A stretch of 64,000 nucleotides of DNA from Phaeosaccion multiseriatum (GCA_965112735.1 OZ218961.1:682001-746000), one strand, 5' to 3'. Positions 57,319 through 64,000 are shown, counted from the stretch's first letter. Made by a program: numbers and translations. Notes: generated from the sequence alone by a model not told the origin.

Positions 57319-60300
57319 ATGTCCTCCCCCACGAAGAGGGCGAAGGTGTTGGACAGCAGCAGTGACGAGGACGAGGACGGTAAGGGAGGGGCGGAAGCCG
57401 CAGGAGCAACAGCTACCCTGGTGGCGAAGTCGGGGCTTGAGTCTTCCTCTTCGGAGGACGAGGACGAGGAGGAGAACGTAGAAGCAGCAAAGAGTAATGA
57501 TTCAGAGTCAGACTCGGAGGAGGAAGGGCGAGGCCGAGGTGGCGAGACCAAGAGGACTAAGATCGCGGGGAACAAAAAGGGAGGAGGAGGCGCCAAGAGT
57601 GACGACCTTTACGACTCCGACTCCGACAGCAGCGTTGAGGGTGACTCGTTGCCCTCTCCCAAATGGTTCGATGCTCGGAGAGTACGTTGCCTCACTGCCG
57701 CTCGGCGACCCCTCTCTACCGGTACGTATCGCATACCTATTCACCCAACACGATGTGTCTCAACAGTATCCTTCGTGCTTGGTCGCGGCAGACACCCTCC
57801 ACCCACCCGCGGCCCCCTTCCTTCACCACTCGCTTCTAGCCACCAGACCAGATCTGAGCATGTTTCCTTACCGCACTCCACTTATGTTGCGCGTCTCATT
57901 GGGCTTGCATTGGTTTGGCTCGATACAGCTGTACCCCTTCAACGTTACTGCCCTGTGCTTTTCAACATGAATGCCCCCCCCCCCCCCCCCCTTGTCAACG
58001 AATAGCATCCTTACCAACGCGAATGCCCTCGTTACCCCCTCATCAGGCAAGAGCGTCGTGTACTGGATGCACCGCGAGCAGCGCTGCAGCGAGAACTGGG
58101 CCATGCTCTACGCCAAGCACCTCGCGGACGAGGCGGGGGTGCCCCTCAGGGTGGCCTTTTGGTGAGTGAGTGTGAGTGCGTGAGGCAGGGCCGGGCAAAG
58201 AGGCGGGGAGGGAGGGGTTGCGTGGAGCTGGGGAGAGGGCGGGGCACGCTGGCCCTCAGTTTCAGTTCCAGCTTGCCCTCAGTGTTTCAGAGGTTTGCGC
58301 TCAAGCCGCACCGCACGCGTGCACTCGCCTGTCGGCGTCTCTCGTCGCTGGCCTGTCTTTTCTTGTCTTGTTGGTAGCAGAGGGTCCTCCCATCTGGAGC
58401 TGCTACTGCTGACTCCACTTGTGTGCTGCATGCATTCCTTCCCTACTCCCTCTCTCTCTCTCTGCCTACCCCCCCCCCCTCTCTCTCTATCCAATACCCA
58501 ACCCACCCTCCACCAGCCTGCAGAACAAGCCGGAGCTGGGCACCCTCCGCCGCTCCGGCTTCATGCTCAAAGGCCTGGCTGAGGTGGAGGCCTCTCTGAG
58601 AGAGCTCCACATCCCCTTCCACTTGCTCACAGATGGCGCAGATGGCAGTGGCCCCCCGTCCACTGCCATCCCCTTGCTGGCAGCGGAGCACTCTGCGGTG
58701 GCTGTGGTGTGCGATATGAGCCCCCTCCGACAGGCTGTAGAAGGGGCACAGGCGGTGGCCGAGGCGCTCAACGCGCAAGGCAGGGACGTGCCGCTCCACC
58801 AGGTACGTAACAGGACAGTACGGTGCAGTACACGCGTTGGGTGTACACCTACTGGCGATGACGATTGTGGTGGTATCGATACTGTATTGTGTGGTCGATA
58901 TCGAAGGATCGAGGACGATGAGCAAACTGGTCTTGCAAACTGGTCTTGCATGTGGTAGGGGAAGGGCGACTCAGGGCCACTGACACACACACAATCTGTG
59001 AGGTGACGCTCCACTCCCTGGTAAAGAGTGAAAGGGCTCAGGGCCATACACACGCTCTGTGAGGTGACGCTCCAATGTACAGGGGGGAAAAGGCACCGCC
59101 CTCATCGTGTCATTACTATTCGTTCCTTGACTTACGTTCCTTTGACTTATGTGCGTTTGGGGCGTTTCCTTCTTCTGTACACACGTGGCAGGTGGACGCA
59201 CACAATGTGGTGCCTGTGTGGCAGGCGTCCAACAAGCGAGAGGTGGGGGCGAGGACCCTTCGGAAGAAGATCATGAGCCAAGACGACTTCTTCACTCCTT
59301 TCCCCGCCCTCACGGCCAATGACAAGGTCACTAATCTCAAGGCATTGACCAGCAGCAGCAACGTTAAGGAGGAGGAGGGGGGCGGCCCACAGTCCTTGAA
59401 GGACCTGCTGGTGGAGAAGGGGGTGGACTGGGCGGCCACATTGAAGGGGATGGACATTGACAGGAGTGTGGGCGAGGTGGATTGGCTGACCCCAGGGACG
59501 GCCGCAGGCAAGGAGCAAGTGGGCAAGTTCATCAAGGACGGTCGCCTCAAGGCCTACGGCAACTCCAGAAACGACCCCAATGTGCCTGCGCAGTCCGATC
59601 TGTCGCCCTACCTTAACTTCGGCCAGCTCAGCGCTCAGTGGGCGGCGCTGACTGTAAAGGAATGTGGCAAGTATCCAGAGAGCGTCAAGGTGAGAGGGAG
59701 AGGGAAGAAGTAGCCCAGTGGGTCTCCACTCCACTCCACTCGATGTTGGAAGTGTGGTGTATGCCAACAAGGCGCCCATCCGCTTACACACACACACACA
59801 CACACGCACACACACACACACTACCCACTCACACGTACACACACACGCACACACATACACACACTACCCACTCACACGTACACACACACGCGCGCGCACA
59901 CACACACACGCACGCAGGATTTTGTGGAGGAGAGCGTGGTCCGTCGCGAGCTGGCGGACAACTTCTGCTTCTACTGCGCTGAGTACGACTCACTCGACGC
60001 GGCTGCGGGCTGGGCCAGAGAGACGCTCAGCAACTGCGAGGGCGACGAGAGGGAGCACCTGTACTCGCTGAAGCAGCTCGAGCAAGCAGAGACGCATGAG
60101 GACCTGTGGAACGCCGTGAGTGAGGGGAGGGGTATTGGGCAGGGATGGGATGGCAGTGGATGGGGAGGGGTGAGGGGTACTGTATGGACTCACGGGCATC
60201 AATTTTAGACTTTTACCTAAGGGGTCCCTAAGACTTACGTAAGGGTGAGAGGGGGTAAGGGGCGGGGCTGGTCACCACATCGGGCAGGGCATACCGTTTT

Positions 60301-62228
60301 CCCATCACTCAGCTCGGAAAGTGATAAGGTGTCTCCTTCTCATCCCCTTCCTCCTCCTCCTCCTCCTCCTCCTCCTCCTCCTCCTCCTCCTCCTCCTCCT
60401 CCTCCTCTTCCTCCTCTTCCTCCTCCTCCTCCTCCTCCTCCTCCTCCTCATCCTCCTCCTCCTCCTCCTCATCCTCCTCCTCCTCCTCCTCCTCCTCCCC
60501 CTCCCCCTCCCCCTTCTCCCTCTGCTGCTGCTCCTCCTCAGGGTCAACTGCAGCTGGTGCGGCATGGCAAGATGCACGGGTGGGTGCGGATGTACTGGGC
60601 TAAAAAGATCTTGGAATGGACGCCCTCACCCGCGGAGGCGCTCCGAATAGGGCTCCTGCTAAACGACAAGTATGTAGGTGGGGGGGGGGCTTGGGATGGA
60701 CAGGGTGAGGGCAGAGGGAGAGAGGGGAAGAGACAGAGACAGAGGCGGGGGCTGGAGAGAGAGAGAGGCCCGTGAACTTAGATACTTGCGCTTTGAACCC
60801 TTTTTTCTGTAACACTCTCTCTCTCTCTCTCTCTCTCGCTCCCTCTCTCTCTCTTCCCCTCTCTTTTGTCTGCGTTCGCTTGGAAAGGTACTCACTGGAC
60901 GGTCAGGACCCGAACGGCTTCACTGGGCTTGGGTGGTCCATAATGGGCATCCACGACATGGGGTGGACACCGCGACCCATCTTTGGCAAGATCCGTTACA
61001 TGAACTACAAGAGCACAAAGACCAAGTTCGACATTCACGCCTATGTCAACAAATTCCCAGGGGCGGCAGACAAGGCTACCGCAGCAGGGGGTACACCGGC
61101 CAGACCGAAGGGAGAGAGGAAGAGCAAGGGGAAGGGAGGGAAGAAGGAGGCAGGGAAAGGGGGCGGCAAGGGAGGGAGTAAGGGGAATACTGCAGAGGAG
61201 GTGTTGGGCCTGAGGAAGCAGCTGGACAAGGCGATTGATGCAAAGGTATGTATGTATGTATGAATGCGATTTGTGTCATCTTACGTATGTAGGTATGTCA
61301 TCTTATGTGTTTGTTTTCCTACGGTGTAGAGAGGAGGGAGAGGGAGTGAGGCAAGGAGGGGGAAGCATGGGAGAGAGGGTGGCGGGTAGAGGGAGGGTGT
61401 ATGTGTGTGCGTATGTGTGCGTCTTTGTGGACAAGGGGCTTTATTGACTCGCGCCTTCCCTCCCTCCCTCCCCATCTCCCTCCCTACCTCCCTTCCTCCC
61501 TCCCTTTCTCCCTATTTCCCTCCCTCCCTCCCTCTCTATCTCTCTCCTCAGGACATGGGCCGCGTGGGTGACATCGTGTCCGCCCTGGGGAATGTTGGCA
61601 TGACCTTCGACCTGCTTAAGGCAACAAAGATCGGCCTCAGTGTCAACAAGGTATGTGTTATGTAAGGAATACGGAAGGGTACGTAAGGTGTACATATTTG
61701 GGACTATCGTCAGCAAATGCATATTCTCCATAAGGAACGCAGTGCTCGTTATCCTCTTGCCTCAACAGTATCTTCTTCTTCTTCTTCTTCTTCTTCTCCC
61801 CGTCCTCATTCTCCACTCACCCTGCACCTTGTCAATCAATCTATCATGTCAGGTGAAGAAGCTGGCGACCGGGGAGGTGAAAGCTCTCGCCAAGGACCTC
61901 ATTAAGAAGTGGAAGGCCGTCGCTGAGAAGGCCGGGCAGCAAGCCAAAGTAGCCACTCCTGGGATGGCCAAGGGGGGTCCTGCTGGTGCTTCTTCTTCTT
62001 CCTCGTCGGGGGCGGGAGGAGGAGGTGGTGGTGGTGGCAACGGGGGGGGGGGGGGGAAGGAAGGGGGGGGTGATGACGACAATGCTGACATTGACGAGTC
62101 TGTTGTTGCTGGGCCGAGAATGCGGATCATTGCTAAGCTGACTGAGGTACGTGCTTCCGAGAAGAAGGAAGGGGGGGGGGGGGGTCAGGAGCGAGAGGTC
62201 TCTCTGTCTGTCTGTCTGTCTGTCTCTC

Positions 62229-62283
<55 letters not shown>

Positions 62284-62328
62284 GTCTGTCTGTCTGTCTG
62301 CCTGTCTGTCTCTCTGTCTGTCTCTCTC

Positions 62329-62375
<47 letters not shown>

Positions 62376-62406
62376 ACCTGTCTGTCTGTCTGTCTGTCTG
62401 TCTGCC

Positions 62407-62443
<37 letters not shown>

Positions 62444-62466
62444 GCCTGTCTGTCTCTCTGTCTGTC

Positions 62467-62497
<31 letters not shown>

Positions 62498-62510
62498 GTC
62501 TGTCTGTCTA

Positions 62511-62575
<65 letters not shown>

Positions 62576-62620
62576 GTCTGTCTGTCTGTCTGCCTGTCTG
62601 TCTCTCTGTCTGTCTCTCTC

Positions 62621-62679
<59 letters not shown>

Positions 62680-62762
62680 ACCTGTCTGTCTGTCTGTCTG
62701 TCTGTCTGCCTGTCTGTCTGTCTCTCTGTCTGTCTGTCTGCCTGTCTGTCTCTCTGTCTGTC

Positions 62763-62833
<71 letters not shown>

Positions 62834-62952
62834 GTCTGTCTGTCTGTCTGTCTGTCTGCCTGTCTGTCTGTCTGTCTGTCTGTCTGCCTGTCTGTCTCTC
62901 TGTCTGTCTCTGTCTGTCTGTCTGTCTCTCTCTCTGTCTGTCTGTCTGTCTA

Positions 62953-63013
<61 letters not shown>

Positions 63014-63058
63014 GTCTGTCTGTCTGTCTGCCTGTCTGTCTCTCTGTCTGTCTCTCTC

Positions 63059-63141
<83 letters not shown>

Positions 63142-63144
63142 GCC

Positions 63145-63177
<33 letters not shown>

Positions 63178-63200
63178 GCCTGTCTGTCTCTCTGTCTGTC

Positions 63201-63263
<63 letters not shown>

Positions 63264-63390
63264 GTCTGTCTATCTGTCTGTCTATCTGTCTGTCTGTCTG
63301 TCTGTCTGCCTGTCTGTTTGTCTACCTGTCTGTCTACCTGTCTGTCTCTCTGTCTGTCTGTCTGTCTCTCTGTCTGTCTGTCTGTCTGTG

Positions 63391-63429
<39 letters not shown>

Positions 63430-63506
63430 GTTTTCTCTCTGTCTGTCTGTCTCTCTCTCTGTCTGTCTGTCTGCCTGTCTGTCTGTCTGTCTCTCTCTCT
63501 GTCTGC

Positions 63507-63538
<32 letters not shown>

Positions 63539-63880
63539 GACTCTCTGTCTCTCTGTCTGTCTGTCTCTCTGTCTGTCTGTCTGGTAAAAATAATCTTTAT
63601 CCTCTGGTGGGTGGGGTGGGGGTGGCGCTTTTCGTATCATTTGTCTTGTGCAATTTTTATTCATATTCATGAAACTTACACAACACAACAGGCCCTGAAG
63701 GAGGGCGACAACTCGGAAACGGCCAGGCGTCTGTCCACTGCCATCGAGCTGCTGATGCACAAGACCTTCCAACAGGAGCCCCAGGGGGGTGGGGATAAGG
63801 CTTACAATGACAAGGCGCGCTCTCTGCTCTTTAACCTGAGGAAGAATGAGGTCCTCAGAAACCATGTGCTGGAGAGCAAG
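57319..63880 (+). CDS. Class II CPD photolyase fused to TFIIS N-terminal and central domains (continues beyond the window)
   Basis: Exons 57319-57721, 58047-58161, 58517-58802, 59192-59689, 59918-60115, 60542-60669, 60888-61245, 61552-61650, 61853-62146 and 63692-63880 are all GT-AG and phase-compatible. Photolyase II motifs: [40 protein letters not shown]....[76 protein letters not shown] motifs: [16 protein letters not shown]...[14 protein letters not shown] and [23 protein letters not shown]. Confidence 0.88.
62198..63582. repeat. (TCTG)n microsatellite, ~1.4 kb, intronic
   Basis: Fills the intron 62147-63691. Confidence 0.95.
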
Positions 63881-64000
63881 GTAGGGAGTTGGTGATACAG
63901 AGAGAGAGTGTGTGTGAGGGGAGGGAGGGAGGGAGGAAGGAAGGGAGGGGGTGGAGAGGGAGGGGGAGAGAGAGAATGGGAGGGAGAGGGACAGGGGACA

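Follow-up and report, generated by a model that had tools for sequence, protein, structure and literature searches.

The 64,000-nucleotide stretch of Phaeosaccion multiseriatum analyzed here (OZ218961.1:682001-746000, hereafter the window) carries on its plus strand, between positions 57319 and 63880, a gene in which a class II cyclobutane pyrimidine dimer (CPD) photolyase is fused in frame, at the DNA level, to the transcription elongation factor TFIIS. When joined, its ten GT...AG exons form an open frame of 856 codons (2568 nt) without a stop, which begins at the first ATG of the open reading frame (ORF), at 57319, and has met no stop by the donor gtaggg at 63881. Exons 1 to 7 encode a complete class II CPD photolyase and exons 8 to 10 encode TFIIS, with matches to the N-terminal domain of TFIIS (TND; Med26/TFIIS_N) in exons 8 and 9 and to TFIIS domain II (TFIIS_M) in exon 10. 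The stretch is eukaryotic and intron-rich, with about 56% GC, and the fusion is a single gene of the nuclear genome of a flagellate alga rich in introns, probably an ochrophyte. The features of the gene, including the helical domain that binds flavin adenine dinucleotide (FAD) and the lesion, are as follows.

57319-57721, plus strand: exon 1, start codon and acidic N-terminal extension, then the start of the photolyase
58047-58161, plus strand: exon 2, N-terminal alpha/beta photolyase domain (PF00875, 5e-5, model positions 1-30)
58517-58802, plus strand: exon 3, N-terminal alpha/beta photolyase domain (PF00875, 3e-10, model positions 45-122)
59192-59689, plus strand: exon 4, in the 59192-60669 block that encodes the interdomain linker and the FAD/CPD-binding helical domain
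59918-60115, plus strand: exon 5, in the same block
60542-60669, plus strand: exon 6, in the same block
60888-61245, plus strand: exon 7, photolyase C-terminus, Lys/Gly linker and first TND helix
60888-61062, plus strand: first part of exon 7, C-terminal end of the photolyase, including the equivalents of W421, D428, W431 and R441 (TIGR00591 positions 398-452/453)
61063-61188, plus strand: middle of exon 7, 42-residue Lys/Gly-rich linker with no stop and no Met
61189-61245, plus strand: end of exon 7, first TND helix, aligning to the EEL-containing first helix of other photolyase-attached TNDs
61552-61650, plus strand: exon 8, middle of the TND (Pfam Med26 positions 2-27; TIGR01385 positions 21-51)
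61853-62146, plus strand: exon 9, last part of the TND followed by an acidic linker rich in Gly and Ser and by the presumed start of domain II
61853-61924, plus strand: end of the TND in exon 9 (Pfam Med26 positions 34-50; TIGR01385 positions 52-84)
62102-62146, plus strand: presumed start of TFIIS domain II in exon 9, by eye only
62147-63691, plus strand: intron 9, with GT..AG borders, holding a (GTCT)n microsatellite
63692-63880, plus strand: exon 10, TFIIS domain II (PF07500 model positions 26-78 of 114; TIGR01385 positions 164-211 of 300)

Each exon junction in this model rebuilds a motif that runs unbroken in relatives without introns or with other splicing, as with the motifs broken before GQLQLV and after LNDK, or with the conserved RVR.L...VVYWM.R.QR motif of the relatives, which is restored by the junction of exons 1 and 2. 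The transition from photolyase to TFIIS lies inside exon 7, where one frame runs through the last 58 photolyase residues, the 42-residue linker and the first TND helix. In the coding frame the linker contains neither a stop nor a Met, and stops occur in both other frames, in agreement with the original prediction, made by a first reading of the sequence, that the photolyase C-terminus continues through a Lys/Gly-rich linker into TFIIS and that three further exons, all in phase 0, follow; exons 8, 9 and 10 are indeed phase 0 in the ten-exon model. A frame of the length of the linker stays open by chance in 16% of shuffles, so that the linker on its own is weak evidence, and the case for the fusion is built instead on the domain content, the shared exon, the sizes of introns 7 and 8 and the homologous architectures found elsewhere. 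These two introns (306 and 202 nt) are similar in size to the other introns of the gene, too short for a terminator and a promoter to fit between the photolyase and TFIIS parts, and exon 7 is free of repeats at the critical junction. A chance ORF and a bacterial or viral origin were both considered and rejected.

The photolyase moiety was assessed by scoring domain models exon by exon; the TIGR00591 (phr2, class II) cut-off of 550 bits refers to the whole protein. The N-terminal alpha/beta domain (PF00875) is matched in exons 2 and 3, of which exon 3 alone exceeds the gathering score, and TIGR00591 positions 147 to 452/453 are collinear over exons 4 to 7 (147 to 396 in exons 4 to 6). Ahead of these domains, exon 1 encodes an acidic Ser/Asp/Glu-rich extension of about 110 residues with basic patches resembling nuclear localization signals (NLS). 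The PDB relatives of the photolyase part are exclusively class II enzymes, from rice (3UMV) and M. mazei (2XRY and 8OET), with exon 7 aligning to residues 424-481 of 3umv and 426-490 of 8oet, while residues equivalent to R164, R256, N257, E301, W360, M379, W381, W388 and N403 of M. mazei lie in exons 4 to 6. The presence of the Trp triad (W360/W381/W388), together with Y345 and N403 (flavin N5), and the alignment of the LWNA, ..REHLY and LLLND segments to the corresponding rice and M. mazei positions bear out the earlier claim of intact class II Trp-triad positions. We take N403 and Y345 to be defining residues of enzymes of the M. mazei (MmCPDII) type. In the PDB alignments, equivalents are also present for every one of the CPD- and bubble-contact residues R164, R256, N257, E301, M379, W421, D428, W431 and R441, the roles of which have been described in MmCPDII (PMC6126647). 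The equivalent of R429 is Met, a listed allowed replacement (PMC6126647), and that of W305 is Arg, as in rice. With regard to function, the window photolyase appears likely to be active in CPD repair.

For the TFIIS moiety, TIGR01385 (TFSII) is matched in order at positions 21-51, 52-84 and 164-211 of 300 in exons 8, 9 and 10, respectively. The two PF08711 pieces, one from exon 8 and one from exon 9, reach 18.2 and 20.0 bits, the cut-off of 20.6 being meant for the whole domain, and the spliced TND reaches 40.7 bits against a profile of photolyase-attached TNDs built without the window. Exon 10 matches PF07500 at 8.4e-9 with 36.3 bits, above the 29.2 cut-off; phmmer returned no match for this exon among PDB sequences at E<=0.01, although Pfam and NCBIfam detect the domain. 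Of the TFIIS architecture originally proposed, namely a TND, a Gly/Ser linker and a central domain, the two domains are thus recovered by Pfam and NCBIfam, whereas the start of the central domain in exon 9 (R..I...L.EAL) was recognized by eye only and gave no Pfam match when scored alone. Domain II is the part of canonical TFIIS that binds the jaw and funnel of RNA polymerase II (Pol II).

The combination of a photolyase with a TFIIS-type domain is not unprecedented. A domain-architecture search across eukaryotes had been suggested together with the original prediction; in the protein sets searched here, the pairing of PF00875 and PF08711 is recurrent, occurring in at least 25 clusters at 90% identity among the matches listed (precomputed Pfam content, two follow-up searches). 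When the junction exon was used as query in an exhaustive search without profiles, photolyase fragments running into a TND were likewise recovered (P0012/P0151, P0009 and P0085/P0155). The fusion is seen, among others, in Mantoniella antarctica (A0A7S0SHQ2) and numerous Mamiellophyceae-like sequences, in a transcript of Pyramimonas (P0186), in Botryococcus braunii (Bobra.0348s0010.1), in many contigs from Tara and JGI, and in a clade with the haptophytes Prymnesium and Emiliania as its nearest named relatives; two metagenome contigs, L001 and L002, carry it as one ORF without introns within a compact gene array. The TND is mostly C-terminal in these proteins, but N-terminal in P0261 and located in the interdomain linker in P0285, P0290 and P0069. 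The last three sequences, which are environmental, bear the TND at about residues 223-308, between the alpha/beta and helical domains, and are sister to the haptophyte-like C-terminal fusions. P0261, which is 622 aa long and groups 12 sequences with contigs of up to 18 kb, has the topology of Chaan_9990 of the raphidophyte Chattonella antiqua, for which a single sentence of an RNA-seq paper mentions a TFIIS domain N-terminal on a class II CPD photolyase (PMC6685483). Public protein sets already contain such proteins, unremarked apart from that sentence: a literature search found no paper containing both 'class II photolyase' and 'TFIIS N-terminal', and none on the function of such a fusion.

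At least seven changes of TND presence or absence are needed on the photolyase tree, and the three differing topologies imply at least three separate fusion events, whatever the tree. When compared with solved structures, the profile of photolyase-attached TNDs built without the window matches the TNDs of Elongin A (6ZUZ), TFIIS (8H6R and 6ZUY) and Med26 at 1e-13 to 1e-16 and those of IWS1, PNUTS and LEDGF far more weakly, these match strengths indicating that the TNDs of the relatives are of the TFIIS/Elongin A type. What is new at this locus is that the fusion carries TFIIS domain II. Among the matches listed, none of the fusion relatives bears TFIIS_M, and proteins with a C-terminal TND end a few residues after it. 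No long protein (413-1314 aa) with the TFIIS_M words of the window was found, and on L001 the haptophyte-like fusion is followed downstream by an unrelated gene that lacks TFIIS_M. A metagenome scan with exon 7 recovered 15 class II photolyase loci, none of them close to the window and none (0/15) with a TND or TFIIS_M downstream. Two further observations concern this family. A subclade without TND (P0180-P0190, 499-691 aa) lies inside the TND-bearing Mamiellophyceae-like photolyases, which suggests either secondary loss or truncated gene models, and a Chlorella sorokiniana protein annotated as 'CPD photolyase isoform B' (P0217, 891 aa) combines protein kinase domains with DNA_photolyase in its precomputed Pfam content and is either a further photolyase fusion or the product of merging gene models.

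With respect to the origin of the fusion, the window photolyase groups in a quick tree with that of Tribonema minus (Xanthophyceae; P0372), at 58% identity and with a Shimodaira-Hasegawa-like approximate likelihood ratio (SH-aLRT) support of 94. The T. minus photolyase ends in a basic tail (AAGGEPAKPKKAR..KK-stop), to which the first part of the window linker is homologous, whereas the tail of the window runs on. No TFIIS-like sequence was found within 10 kb downstream of the T. minus photolyase. Against the profile of photolyase-attached TNDs, the TNDs of human TFIIS and Elongin A score 56-61 bits, compared with 40.7 for that of the window, which places the latter outside any special photolyase-type TND lineage. 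An unfused nearest photolyase relative, a homologous tail, the lack of TFIIS near the T. minus gene and a low-scoring TND together suggest that the lineage of the window fused its photolyase to a whole TFIIS independently. In T. minus, a gene for 230 aa with no Pfam match (L018, 15692-16860) follows the photolyase on the same strand after 330 bp. It is not TFIIS-like by tblastn, and the idea that the fusion arose by read-through into an ancestral neighbor is unsupported.

The reading that we favor, with a probability of roughly 0.55, is that the fusion tethers photorepair to elongating Pol II, the TFIIS part acting as the tether. The TND of TFIIS binds TND-interacting motifs (TIMs) in IWS1, LEO1, PAF1 and other proteins, linking elongation factors to Pol II (PMC9987994). 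In the fusion, the TND would dock on such disordered TIMs in elongation factors of the IWS1, PAF1 and LEO1 type, and domain II would add a direct contact with Pol II in the lineage of the window. Elongating Pol II would thus carry the photolyase along on a flexible, basic 42-residue linker that lets it reach DNA ahead of or behind the polymerase, and photorepair would be focused on DNA under transcription, whether in front of the polymerase or where backtracking of a stalled polymerase lays a lesion bare. A handicap of free photolyase might thereby be offset: a review reports that photorepair in yeast is faster on the non-transcribed strand, which is read there as stalled Pol II blocking photolyase (PMC7694213). 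Because the TND is the feature common to all the lineages, the general mechanism is probably recruitment through TIM-bearing factors.

The original prediction had coupled photolyase to Pol II through this tether and had supposed that TFIIS-promoted transcript cleavage in backtracked complexes re-exposes the lesion. Its first part gains comparative support from the recurrent TND fusions. The second fares less well, since the recurrent partner is the TND and not domain II or the zinc ribbon, which argues for a photolyase that rides with the elongation complex, and TFIIS does not need its TND to rescue backtracked polymerase (PMC9987994). Repair of a CPD in the Pol II active site is, moreover, implausible on steric grounds without long backtracking, and a traveling photolyase is for this reason too preferred over cleavage that re-exposes the lesion, the two being compatible. 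A bolder version holds that photoreactivation coupled to, or associated with, transcription is a genuine mode of repair not recognized before, that algae have wired class II photolyase to Pol II elongation several times by means of TNDs and that here a complete, functional TFIIS would bring its own photolyase to polymerases that have arrested or backtracked, where direct reversal by light would stand in for transcription-coupled nucleotide excision repair (TC-NER) of the CSB type; we consider it tentative and rather doubtful.

Several points weigh against a polymerase-tethered repair enzyme. The fusion is known here from DNA sequence alone. The window ends within domain II, the second half of which would fall past base 64000 together with the zinc ribbon, and the link between exons 9 and 10 spans a 1.4-kb microsatellite, a possible site of misassembly. 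Since the relatives keep only the TND, domain II and the cleavage function of TFIIS may be irrelevant or vestigial in this context; and because a CPD held in the active site of a stalled Pol II cannot flip into the photolyase, direct repair in an arrested complex would require extensive backtracking. With regard to the photolyase itself, the consensus is kept at 105 of the 114 near-invariant columns (at least 95% conserved in 88 other class II photolyases), while the median agreement of the other sequences at these columns is 99%. The nine deviations include the equivalents of R280W, H336C, R411Q and E433P, which lie in exons 4, 5 and 7 (residues 418, 474, 549 and 571 after splicing). In the photolyase tree, the branch of the window measures 0.81, as compared with 0.36 for its sister Tribonema, and this long branch and the nine unusual columns imply that repair activity may be altered.

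These same divergences would fit a photolyase moiety that had become a cryptochrome-like sensor of light or damage that modulates TFIIS or elongation instead of repairing DNA; the retention of the Trp triad and of all the listed CPD-, bubble- and FAD-contact residues, together with the resemblance of the TND-only relatives to ordinary photolyases, makes such a shift improbable. Of greater weight, although still unlikely, is the production of two proteins from one locus, with most photolyase mRNA ending in or just after exon 7, TFIIS starting internally at Met580 or Met664 (exon 8), and the fusion minor or absent. Retention of intron 7 would give a stop after five codons, at 61263 (ORF 60772..61263), the dispensability of the TND for backtrack rescue means that a TFIIS starting at Met664 could work (PMC9987994), and in T. 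minus, the nearest relative with a name, the photolyase ends with the homologous tail. Such an arrangement is hard to reconcile with a first TND helix that sits in the photolyase exon with no Met ahead of it in the linker and with the lack of an intergenic spacer, and the intronless photolyase-TND ORFs seen elsewhere show that fusions of this kind arise and persist.

A further rival, to which we give less credence than to two separate products, is that the TND/TFIIS part serves mainly in nuclear import, retention or stability of the photolyase, with no coupling to transcription. Mutations in the TND of human TFIIS affect nuclear localization (review, PMC9987994), and in many class II photolyases the C-terminus is, in place of a TND, a basic tail resembling an NLS; yet a simple basic tail already suffices in those relatives, and the repeated capture, in three topologies, of a fold that docks elongation factors would be hard to explain on these grounds. 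An artefact, whether by misassembly at the microsatellite, by loss of a stop to sequencing error or by decay into a pseudogene, seems very improbable. Intron 9 does consist of a 1.4-kb (GTCT)n array, and an exact look-up of three ORFs of the window did not find the gene in other assemblies, but a frame open over 856 codons, ten pairs of canonical splice sites and model positions that remain collinear across every intron are difficult to obtain by error, and the exon 7 junction is free of repeats. On the same evidence of open codons, splice pairs and collinear domains, a pseudogene was rejected.

Compared with the class II CPD photolyases of rice (3UMV), M. mazei (2XRY/8OET) and T. minus (P0372), the window protein is alike in TIGR00591 collinearity, in the Trp triad and its Tyr, in N403 and in the contact residues, and differs by its continuation into TFIIS, its acidic extension of about 110 residues and its 9 of 114 deviating near-invariant columns. 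With the photolyase-TND fusions of Mantoniella, Botryococcus, Pyramimonas and Chattonella it shares a photolyase and a TND in one polypeptide with a low-complexity linker; those proteins end after the TND, or bear it N-terminally or internally, whereas that of the window continues into TFIIS_M. As in TFIIS (TCEA1/Dst1; TIGR01385), TND, flexible linker and domain II follow one another in canonical order and spacing, but here a photolyase of 640 residues precedes the TND, which has no start codon of its own. Like bacterial Mfd and the CSB/CSA/UVSSA system of TC-NER, the fusion would tie the removal of lesions to a polymerase engaged in transcription, an analogy of function only, with no sequence relationship. 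Those systems make use of excision, ATP-dependent displacement of the polymerase and ubiquitin signaling, while in the fusion an enzyme tethered by a covalent bond would reverse the lesion directly with light.

In the prevailing view, eukaryotes depend on TC-NER, which is based on excision, for transcription-coupled repair. A fusion of photolyase and elongation factor is a 'Rosetta stone' hint that some sun-exposed algae may couple direct reversal to transcription and, if this is true, it would represent a new branch of transcription-coupled repair. The TND interaction network would likewise gain a new type of client, a DNA-repair enzyme. The recurrence of such fusions in three topologies turns transcription-linked photorepair into a concrete, testable hypothesis.

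Some minor features of the gene and its surroundings may also be recorded. Within the N-terminal extension, residues 1-110 (57319-57650) contain CK2-like SxxE/D runs and basic KRxK patches, a composition that resembles the acidic linkers of TIMs, and the extension could conceivably act as an intra- or intermolecular ligand of a TND. The array in intron 9 comprises about 351 copies of (GTCT)n (62198-63583) and is stop-free in the coding frame, yielding a spurious ORF of 751 aa (61640-63895) and long antisense ORFs; shorter arrays of (CTC)n (about 69 copies, 60333-60539) and (AC)n (about 63 copies, 59786-59913) occupy introns 5 and 4, respectively. Upstream, a dynein heavy chain gene has exons on the minus strand between about 33200 and 54500 (matches to DHC_N1, AAA_6, AAA lid and AAA_7); the organism builds dynein motors and probably flagella. 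This gene is arranged head to head with the fusion gene, and the divergent promoter region between them, at about 54.5-57.3 kb (1-3 kb), is probably shared.

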